A stretch of 64,000 bases of DNA from Piromyces finnis finn. Its lineage: Eukaryota; Fungi; Neocallimastigomycota. The notes beneath the pieces were generated by a model. The model made no database searches. It was not told the DNA's origin and saw only the letters and a program-made list of their open reading frames with translations. Both the position numbers and the translations under genes were made by a program. How positions within the stretch are numbered: position 1 is the stretch's first letter; each line of letters begins with the position of its first letter. Where the stretch lies: positions 620,001 to 684,000 of the forward strand of contig MCFH01000010.1 of assembly GCA_002104945.1 (NCBI GenBank). The letters are read 5' to 3'. Positions 56,593-59,001 of this stretch are shown here, one piece after another.

Positions 56593-59001
56593 CTATATAA
56601 GATTTTCAATGTTTAATACAGATGAATGTGATTTATTATTGGTATTTTGATTGTTAGATTGGGTATTATCGTCTGAAGTGTTCTTTAATTGATTTGATTC
56701 TTCTTTTGTGTTATTATTTTTAAATATCTCCATTGAAATTGACCATGCAGGTTTATTAAATTTTTCTTGACCATTTAAGTAAATTATTTTGCGTTTAAAA
56801 ACGTTTTGATTAAAATCACAAATATTACTTAGAGTACTTTCAATCTTACATGTCTTTGAATTAAAATGTTTAATAGAATTTTGATCTAATTCAATTTTTG
56901 ATTAATACGGATTTAATCACAAAATATATTTATTAAATAATTAGTATATTTAATATTTTATATATTTAAAAACATTGTTTTACAGTACTAATATTTATAT
57001 ATATATTTGTATTAAATATATTAAATATACTACTTACTATTATCTTTTTTATCATTAATACAATTTATTTGTTGATTAAGTTCATTATTATTATTTGATA
57101 CATCATAATTATTAAATGTATTATTATAATTACTTTTATTATTGATGGAATCATTAACATAATTTAAATTGTATTTATTATTATTTATAACATTATTCAC
57201 ATTATTATAACAATTAATTTTATTTTTATTGTTATTATTATTATTATTATTATCCATATTATTAAAATTGGCGTTATTACAATTTACATTATTTTGGAAT
57301 TCATTTTGACTAATGGTATAATTACTTATATTTTCTTCATTATTTGTAATGTTCATATTGTTAATATTTATACTCATATTATTATTGCTGTTATTATTAA
57401 TACTATAATTATTACAATTAGAAATATTATTAGATTGCTTATCATTGTATGTATCATTTAATGATAAACTATATACTGATTGATCAATAAAAAAATTATC
57501 TCTCTTATTTATATTACTATTACTATTATTAATATTATCATCGTAATCATTATTATTACTACTATAATTATCAATGCTAGATGATGAGCTATTTATATTT
57601 TCATTAATGCAATTCGTAGGCGAAAAAGATTCTTTTTCATGATAATTAATTGATTTATTATATGGTAAATTAGAATAAGACGATGCATTTGATAATGGCG
57701 GTGATAGTATTCTATATTTATTATAATTGTCCGATTTGTTATTTATGATGTTATTTTCTTGAGATTGCTCGTTTTTATTATTTATATTGTTTATATTCGT
57801 GTTTAATATTGATTGAGAAGAATCCTGAAACCAATTTGTATCATTTGAATATATAGCTGTTGATGAATTTATGTTTTGTTGTATACTTGACTCATACATA
57901 GAAGGAGAATGAGTAATAGATTCACTTCTATATATTAAGGACGACATAGAAGATTCTGGTTTTAAATACCTATTATCATTATCATAATTTATATTTGTAG
58001 TTGTAGTAATAGAAGAGGAAGAGGAAGAAGTAGAGGTATTATAAGAAGATGAATCAATAATACTATTGCTATTATCACAATTGTTGTAATTAGAAGAAGT
58101 GGAATAATTATTTTGATCTTGGACAATTATACTTTCTTCTTTTACTTTTTTTAAATTTATTGTAGACAATGAAGTTGATGGAAATAACACTTTTGAATCC
58201 TGTCCTGAATTCTTTTTCTTTTTATATACATTATTATTATCATTATCTTTAATATTAGGTATTTTTCCAGAAGCTATTAACTCTTGCCAAACCTTTTTAA
58301 TAAATGTACTCGTAATTAAGTTTGGATTTTCACCAGCTTTTAAAAGCACTGTTTTCCATAAATATCTCCTATGATCTGGATTTTTTGTTAGTTTTTTTAA
58401 TGAACGACATAATCTTTCATGTGAAGGCTTTGACCAATCTGGAAAATCTTTTAATTGCTATTTACATTTGTATTTTTAATATATATATAATATAAATTAA
58501 AATAAGTTAATATTTAAATAATATATATATTATTGGAAATATATTAATACCTCTAATACCAGAGCTAGATAGAATTAATGGACAAATTGTATTAAAAGTT
58601 TTATGAATAATAGATAATTAAAAAAAAAGTTATATGATATTATTTATAAAACAGTTAATATTTAACATACCACAATCAAGAAATCTATATACGCTTGCGC
58701 GAGAAATTTTCCAGACATCCCGAAAATATGATTCAACAGTTTGGCTTTTTGTTTTATAGAGTTTTTGTGAAACAATAGCATGTGCTGCCATAACAGTTTG
58801 TCTAAACCGTTCTTGTTTTGCTCTATAATCTTCGCTATTAAATATTAATATTTATTAATATGTTTTCCATAAACATTTATGATTATGTTCTTATTACATA
58901 ATTTATTTTTAATTTTTATAAAGAATTGAAATTATTTACCGATTATACCATTTCAAAACAGTTAAATCAATTTTCTTTTCTAAGGAATCCAAATCAGACA
59001 T
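56593..59001 (-). CDS. Uncharacterised 650-aa protein: conserved helical N-terminal domain (putatively DNA-binding) plus N/S-rich disordered tail; 5 exons
   Basis: Exons 59001-58940, 58834-58671, 58564-58551, 58457-57038 and 56885-56593 all have GT-AG borders and sum to 1953 nt without an internal stop. Confidence 0.85.

Follow-up and report, generated by a model that had tools for sequence, protein, structure and literature searches.

A spliced gene of the anaerobic fungus Piromyces finnis and its apparently undescribed family, with a predicted helix-turn-helix domain related to an unnamed domain of bacteria and phages

The window analyzed here is a stretch of 64,000 nucleotides from the anaerobic gut fungus Piromyces finnis (contig MCFH01000010.1, forward-strand positions 620,001 to 684,000; G000:C2:620001-684000 in our numbering), from an assembly of 56.46 Mb in 232 contigs with about 18% GC. 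Positions 56593-59001 of its minus strand run from the stop codon to the ATG of one gene of five exons and 650 codons, and the N-terminal domain of the product has, by profile comparison, relatives both in other zoosporic fungi and in bacteria and phages. A preliminary description of this DNA had placed an intron-containing gene at 56593-59001, which is exact to the nucleotide, and translation of the exons reproduces every peptide that it quoted. The exons, introns and protein features of the gene are as follows.

58940-59001, minus strand: exon 1, 62 nt, with the ATG at 59001-58999; the joint 58834|58940 occurs in X3 and X4 contigs
58835-58939, minus strand: intron 1, 105 nt, GT..AG, skipped in the spliced X3 and X4 contigs
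58671-58834, minus strand: exon 2, 164 nt, encoding the predicted long helix at the start of the domain, then the helix-turn-helix as far as ...YRFLDC
58565-58670, minus strand: intron 2, GTATGT..AG, placed from sequence and spliced contigs
58551-58564, minus strand: micro-exon 3, 14 nt, completing A-L-V-L-E within the predicted recognition helix
58458-58550, minus strand: intron 3, GT..AG, placed from sequence and spliced contigs
57038-58457, minus strand: exon 4, 1420 nt, encoding the second half of the domain, the KKKK patch and the N/S-rich low-complexity region
56886-57037, minus strand: intron 4, 152 nt, GTAAGT..AG, with an in-frame acceptor and the joint 56885|57038 in an X3 contig
56593-56885, minus strand: exon 5, including the stop codon, with contigs over 56619-56885 in X3 and X4
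58260-58995, minus strand: predicted helical domain with helix-turn-helix, about 144 residues, introns 1-3 included, delimited by alignments, an AlphaFold2 model and hhalign
58551-58737, minus strand: predicted helix-turn-helix core (VESYFRDVW, turn, SRASVYRFLDCALVLE), split by intron 2
58212-58223, minus strand: KKKK basic patch directly after the domain, a candidate nuclear localization signal
56728-56754, minus strand: KPAWSISME, a short conserved C-terminal motif
56596-56616, minus strand: C-terminal LNIENLI, the last residues before the stop codon

The five exons sum to 1950 nt, with the stop codon at 56593-56595. X3 and X4 are two public runs from one study, whose contigs match the gene perfectly and whose joints all show GT..AG ends on the minus strand; their pieces span exon 2 (58671-58834) and exon 4 at 57498-58459 and 57038-57078, and the low-complexity middle at about 57080-57500 is without contig coverage. 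Since such joined exon forms arise only from spliced RNA, the gene is expressed, and the contigs confirm all four introns, the two beside the micro-exon included. The junction sequences are identical in the annotated Neocallimastix lanati ortholog P0001, which gives second, independent support for the model, and the N-terminus of the gene agrees with that of P0001. This ortholog, annotated as a hypothetical protein of 373 aa, is 85% identical over the domain and has a similar C-terminus; together with other database proteins it took the place of the spliced product of the window gene in the protein-level analyses.

The letters of the micro-exon sit between the two sides of a joint recorded as 58459|58671 in X3 and X4 contigs, the coordinate 58459 resulting from the aligner having taken the first two micro-exon letters into 58458-58459. 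Its inclusion restores the family-invariant DCAxVLxxL. The neighboring exons were scored against a hidden Markov model (HMM) built from 62 fungal sequences only, hereafter the fungal profile: exon 2, whose translation contains ...FRQTVMAAHAIVSQKLYKTKSQTVESYFRDVWKISRASVYRFLDC, reached 79.4 bits over profile positions 18-75, and exon 4 reached 67 bits over positions 78-141. The translation of exon 4 starts with QLKDFPDWSKPSHERLCRSLKKL and continues through ...RRYLWKTVLLKAGE...ITSTFIKKVW to the KKKK patch and about 390 N/S-rich residues; a basic patch and an N/S-rich tail, as reported in the preliminary description, are thus present.

A word search with the domain of the ortholog (P0001:1-145) returned domains of about 50% identity in Geranomyces, Paraphysoderma and further proteins of Neocallimastigomycota, and this level of identity is kept across chytrids, blastoclads and Neocallimastigomycota. 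Twenty-nine alignment columns are invariant, including W-I-S-R-A, V-Y-R-F-L-D-C-A and E-R-L-C-R-S-L-K, and the conservation of the domain, judged from these alignments, is far beyond chance. An exhaustive profile search over 1.84 billion representatives yielded 1296 matches at an expectation value (E) of <=1e-3, with 224 at <=1e-10 and 71 at <=1e-30. The best 150 of these 1296 matches were inspected, and the following distribution refers to the named proteins among the matches of the searches. All 35 named eukaryotic matches are zoosporic fungi or an aphelid, in keeping with the early-diverging fungi named in the preliminary description, and all carry the label 'hypothetical' or 'uncharacterized'; proteins of Dikarya, Mucoromycota, animals or plants were not among the matches listed. 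Members occur in Neocallimastigomycota (Neocallimastix, Piromyces and Pecoramyces, with one paralog annotated in Piromyces finnis), in Chytridiomycota in the wide sense (Spizellomyces, Geranomyces, Polychytrium, Batrachochytrium, Kappamyces, Blyttiomyces, Quaeritorhiza, Rhizophlyctis, Fimicolochytrium, Phlyctochytrium and one Chytridiales species), in Monoblepharidomycetes (Gonapodya and Hyaloraphidium), in Blastocladiomycota (Allomyces, Paraphysoderma, Coelomomyces and Sorochytrium) and in the aphelid Paraphelidium.

A count of paralogs, which had been suggested at the outset, gave about 22 loci in this genome that match the profile exon by exon. At least eight of them are near-identical and lie on three contigs, C190 (about 288-320 kb), C115 (about 2-9 kb) and C208 (about 2-33 kb), with the same profile scores (60.8 and 36.3 bits), a few kb apart and on both strands; these copies could represent a recent duplicated cluster, a repeat assembly or a gene-bearing repeat unit. 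A word search with the 62-sequence fungal profile in the 79-252 aa range found eukaryotic fragments only. One Pfam-labelled protein from a 1086-bp ENA metagenome contig (P0002) was rejected as a relative, being a chimeric prediction: its first 24 residues match exon 4 at 23 of 24 positions and the remainder is membrane sulfatase/LtaS-like, and the contig is probably a rumen metagenome mis-assembly.

No family of Pfam, NCBIfam or PHROG covers the fungal domain at threshold, as the earlier wording of an unnamed family had anticipated, and Pfam and PHROG scans of single exons gave no match either. Below the gathering score, DUF3791 (PF12668) matched 19 of the 62 members (best 21.6 bits against a cut-off of 25) and resolvase HTH_7 (PF02796) matched 12 of 62 (best E 1e-3), both spanning only about 26 residues on the predicted helix-turn-helix. 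The per-member Pfam scans further gave weak similarities to HTH_Tnp_IS630 and HTH_28, and NCBIfam gave only weak matches to the Borrelia PF49 (borfam_49) partition proteins, common to fungal and phage members. Nine long family members have no further Pfam domain, and Pfam scans of P0001 and these nine relatives detected no methylase, other enzymatic, transposase, integrase or capsid domain. Beyond the domain, basic patches stand at the place equivalent to the KKKK patch in P0001 and in P0009-P0013, and the patch is a candidate nuclear localization signal. The tail that follows it, about 480 residues long, is N/S-rich and disordered and contains two short lineage-specific motifs near the C-terminus, of which KPAWSISME is common only to P0001 and one Neocallimastigomycota paralog group. 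The LNIENLI ending, likened in the preliminary description to short motifs at the ends of fungal transcription factors, is indeed present at the C-terminus, but it is conserved only in the Neocallimastix ortholog, as LNIENLL.

The preliminary description had given a pattern of prokaryotic hypothetical proteins, and proteins of this kind (..IRD.RLYR....TFEEYC..RW...R..AYRLI.AA.V..NL...P..ERQ.RPL) were found in cyanobacteria, many other phyla and phage contigs. The search pattern TFEEYC..R[WF], taken from this motif and run as a DNA pattern, occurs in 38 IMG/VR contigs, and the open reading frames (ORFs) of these contigs show the pattern in full. The fungal profile scored the IMG/VR ORFs at up to 65.5 bits over positions 26-140, with 33 ORFs above 20 bits, and gave -1.8 bits to L028, which carries the search motif by chance. 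In GTDB genomes, the pattern marked 89 loci, whose bacterial ORFs score about 50-60 bits (best 59.8) with the profile, and the domain was seen in Cyanobacteriota (many heterocystous genera), Chloroflexota, Acidobacteriota, Verrucomicrobiota, Actinomycetota, Planctomycetota, Desulfobacterota, Bacteroidota and Pseudomonadota; among the 4334 ORFs of these loci the profile scored only the intended ORF of each locus and one further family copy. Without motif pre-selection, the profile found matches in 24 of 201 cyanobacterial genomes sampled evenly (best E per genome 1e-15, up to seven copies in Calothrix, positions about 20-140).

Direct comparison of the fungal profile with the phage-domain alignment by hhalign gave a probability of 99.4% (E 4.4e-21, 123 columns, 29% identity). 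The shared positions, LY[KR], [ST][FL]E.Y, W, SR..YR, A.V...L, P..ER..R.L, W..V and T[AS]..[IV], keep one order across the whole domain, beginning with its long opening helix and ending with its final one, in the hhalign alignment and in the consensus lines. The profile scores, the hhalign result and the motif-free cyanobacterial search together establish homology at the sequence level between the fungal domain and an unnamed domain widespread in bacteria and tailed phages, so that significant prokaryotic relatives, expected beforehand, exist. In the copies searched, the prokaryotic domain belongs to no family of Pfam or NCBIfam and to no clear one of PHROG. It is found by itself or ahead of a Dam methylase (PF05869) or DUF5131 on the N-terminal side, a frequent but not universal linkage that bears out the association with DNA-methylase genes noted in the preliminary description. 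In the window gene no such linkage to Dam or DUF5131 is present, as it carries no enzymatic domain.

The fungal and prokaryotic versions differ in their surroundings and in their degree of conservation. The fungal genes carry introns and long low-complexity tails instead of enzymes, and their domain is far more conserved, with near-invariant WKISRAQVYRFLDCA and ERLCRSLK. The exact fungal motifs VYRFLDCA and ERLCRSLK found no relatives in GTDB genomes or IMG/VR, and tblastn of the ortholog domain against 50,697 phage records gave nothing significant. As no close prokaryotic copies appeared in these searches, contamination does not explain the gene and was rejected as its origin. When the 62 fungal rows were placed in a quick, unrooted maximum-likelihood tree together with 25 phage and 47 bacterial rows, a single branch set all fungal rows apart, with a support of 100 in the Shimodaira-Hasegawa-like approximate likelihood-ratio test, and the phage and bacterial rows intermixed. 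The phylogeny envisaged in the preliminary description hence separates the fungal sequences as a clade of their own, but the tree, having no root, names no donor.

AlphaFold2 modeling of the ortholog domain with a 12-sequence alignment gave an all-helical prediction with a predicted local distance difference test score of 91.3 and a predicted template modeling (TM) score of 0.82. The helix-turn-helix (HTH; ...ESYFRDVW / SRASVYRFLDCALVLEQL) of this model consists of helix 52-60 and a long helix at 64-79, with three more helices after it, and its core, made up of these two helices, includes the invariant W, I, S-R-A and V-Y-R-F-L-D-C-A. Foldseek against the PDB gave no match at E<=1e-3, the best rows being Noc, VirB and ParB, and the sequence profile found no match in the PDB. 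With VIA-align, the highest scores went to alpha-domains of Raf1 (Rubisco accumulation factor 1; Z 8.3, 7.6 and 7.1, the best over 115 residues with a root-mean-square deviation of 4.1), followed by Spo0J (Z 6.9), KorB (6.7 and 6.4), a ParB-parS complex (6.3), SopB (5.8) and P1 ParB (5.5), with alignments of 102-111 residues for the ParB group. Values of Z 5.5-8.3 are moderate for a helical protein and suggest a relationship, though they are no proof of one. Neighbors in the ESM Atlas and BFVD, at TM 0.6-0.66, are phage and cyanobacterial hypothetical proteins, ParB_N proteins, ParB_N proteins with a methyltransferase, DUF3102 and DUF222. Among them, the phage proteins of BFVD reach TM 0.60-0.66 with a probability of 1.00 but E values of only 5e-3 to 2e-2, and the phage and cyanobacterial clusters of the ESM Atlas reach TM 0.62-0.65. 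A search of this genome for DUF3102 (PF11300) found none.

The HTH domain proposed in the preliminary description is therefore matched by a predicted all-helical fold that contains a helix-turn-helix and has a moderate resemblance to the DNA-binding domains of ParB and KorB. The helical arrangement of the model, in which a helix-turn-helix precedes further helices, is similar to that of the central DNA-binding domain of ParB, Spo0J, KorB and SopB, at Z values lower than those that the tool takes as safe for helical proteins. The surrounding architecture is different, as ParB has an N-terminal CTPase and a C-terminal dimerization domain, whereas the fungal domain starts at about residue 3 and has no ParB_N match; neither P0001 nor the 62 members matched HTH_ParB (PF17762) or KorB (PF08535) in Pfam, even at E<=10. 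Comparison of the phage-domain alignment with four canonical ParB HTH sequences gave 49% in hhalign, with a pairwise E of 2e-4 and in register including a GHARALL-like helix, on a very small ParB alignment, and this is suggestive of a sequence link between the prokaryotic sister domain and the canonical ParB HTH.

Taken together, a predicted HTH domain, a basic patch and a long disordered tail fit the architecture of a sequence-specific transcription factor, and we suggest, with a probability of roughly 0.6, that the gene encodes a transcription regulator specific to these lineages, which acquired its DNA-binding domain from a prokaryote or phage early in fungal evolution. The putative recognition helix SRA(Q/S)VYRF and the invariant next helix ERLCRSLK would bind specific DNA, the basic patch would import the protein into the nucleus, and the disordered tail could recruit co-factors. 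A wider and more tentative scenario, to which we give somewhat less than even odds, is that the fungal lineage, aphelids included, captured a ParB-type HTH from a phage or bacterium close to its root, and that this HTH expanded into a major family of sequence-specific regulators in flagellated fungi and was lost with the zoosporic lifestyle in terrestrial fungi. The captured domain may have been tied historically to a Dam-type adenine methylase carrying a similar domain.

Several points weigh against the proposed regulator and its origin. DNA binding, the nuclear and transcriptional roles, and the direction and timing of transfer are all inferred. The structural Z scores fall, according to the warning of the tool itself, within a range that can reflect a common helical arrangement, the best structural match is to the Raf1 alpha-domain, a protein-binding chaperone domain, and the fungal profile gave no significant match to the canonical ParB HTH. 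The C-terminal motifs, once considered as family-wide signatures, were rejected as such, being confined to Neocallimastigomycota. The prokaryotic rows of the tree are biased by the motif used to collect them (TFEEYC carriers only), and as the tree is also unrooted, the donor is not nameable. Other eukaryotes may hold members among the profile matches beyond the best 150 of 1296.

The possibility that the family is part of an N6-methyladenine (6mA) system, in which the HTH would target or read the sites of an adenine methylase, Dam-type or other, has the best claim among the other explanations, and we consider it unlikely. In passages of Iyer, Zhang and Aravind (2016; PMC4738411), a ParB-type HTH is described as fused to chlorophyte-type Dam methyltransferases in chytrids and some chlorophytes, and strong 6mA is predicted in basal fungi. 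The prokaryotic fusions to Dam described above point in the same direction, as does the sole Dam-family (PF05869) match in this genome (G000:C156:553933-557325, minus strand, 28.9 bits): its ORF and three upstream exons match positions 81-127, 55-79, 35-48 and 9-33 of the phage-domain alignment colinearly, with individually low exon scores apart from 13.7 and 7.6 bits. A long poly-N-rich ORF follows this intron-containing Dam gene. The phage- and cyanobacteria-derived kind of HTH that those passages report from chytrid genomes is thus seen in this genome as well. The Dam-linked copy, on the other hand, scores about zero against the fungal profile, and the window gene differs from the published fusion in having no methylase and in belonging to a separate, far more conserved clade; its nine long relatives likewise lack a methylase or other enzymatic domain, and at least 20 diverse paralogs are easier to reconcile with many different DNA specificities than with a single pathway of methylation. 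The precedent is therefore partial: this kind of domain was already known in chytrids as a Dam fusion, and the free-standing family appears new. That family, strongly conserved as it is, appears to be undescribed, as it was found neither in full-text literature searching nor in the passages of PMC4738411 returned by a term search.

It is also conceivable, with a rather small probability, that the family is ancestral in eukaryotes, having been lost or having diverged outside zoosporic fungi, or that it moved from eukaryotes to phages. The tree without a root, a taxonomy drawn from the best 150 of 1296 matches and the Dam-linked version reported from some chlorophytes (in the passages of PMC4738411 just cited) would all be compatible with this, but the prokaryotic side spans nine phyla and phages with phage and bacterial rows intermixed, and all fungal sequences fall into one clade with good support, confined to one part of the eukaryotic tree among the 35 named matches.

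An origin from a transposon or virus, with the HTH binding the ends of the element and the present copy domesticated or carried as a passenger gene, seems very improbable. The equally scoring copies on C190, C115 and C208, a few kb apart, would fit recent duplication or a repeat unit, weak similarities to HTH_7, HTH_Tnp_IS630 and HTH_28 were seen, and the prokaryotic relatives are common in phages; yet an 85%-identical ortholog in another genus has the same splice junctions, members of about 50% identity extend across fungal phyla, the gene is expressed with four spliceosomal introns, and neither it nor the nine long relatives contain a transposase, integrase or capsid domain.

Least probable of all is a protein-protein interaction module in a scaffold or chaperone, as the top Raf1 scores might imply, since the likeness is structural only (5-9% identity and no Pfam Raf1 match), the beta-domain of Raf1 and its binding of RbcL are not present in the fungal protein, the predicted recognition helix is where the invariant residues concentrate, the sequence homologs are fused to DNA-modifying enzymes, and the DNA-binding domains of ParB, KorB and SopB follow closely in Z.

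The transcription regulator with a captured prokaryotic or phage domain, which we favor, would have a precedent in the APSES/SBF transcription factors of fungi, whose KilA-N domain was acquired from a virus or phage according to Medina et al. (2016; PMC4862756). There too, a prokaryotic or viral DNA-binding domain gave rise to an early fungal transcription-factor family, but KilA-N has a different fold, and SBF/APSES was retained in Dikarya, whereas the present family is seen only in zoosporic lineages. If the proposed function and origin are correct, the family would be a second independent case, beside KilA-N/SBF, in which a DNA-binding domain of viral or prokaryotic derivation rewired early fungal regulation.

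Naming the family would add a lineage-specific class of putative regulators for chytrids, blastoclads, anaerobic gut fungi and aphelids, groups to which Batrachochytrium, a pathogen of amphibians, and the rumen fungi used in biotechnology belong. Catalogs of transcription factors in early-diverging fungi draw on the DNA-binding domains of Pfam, so that a family without a Pfam model is invisible to them, although this genome has at least 20 loci of it and public data contain 224 representatives at E<=1e-10. The same work delimits an unnamed domain, widespread in bacteria and phages, that may target Dam and DUF5131 enzymes, and connects the fungal family with the phage-type Dam methylase found in these genomes.

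Two repetitive tracts lie in the intergenic DNA upstream of the gene. At 59440-59830 of the window there is a long imperfect ATTT/ATTC tandem repeat (..tttatttatttattcatt..), which gives rise to artificial ORFs reading FIYLFIY, and a 40-nt run of A stands at about 59290-59330.

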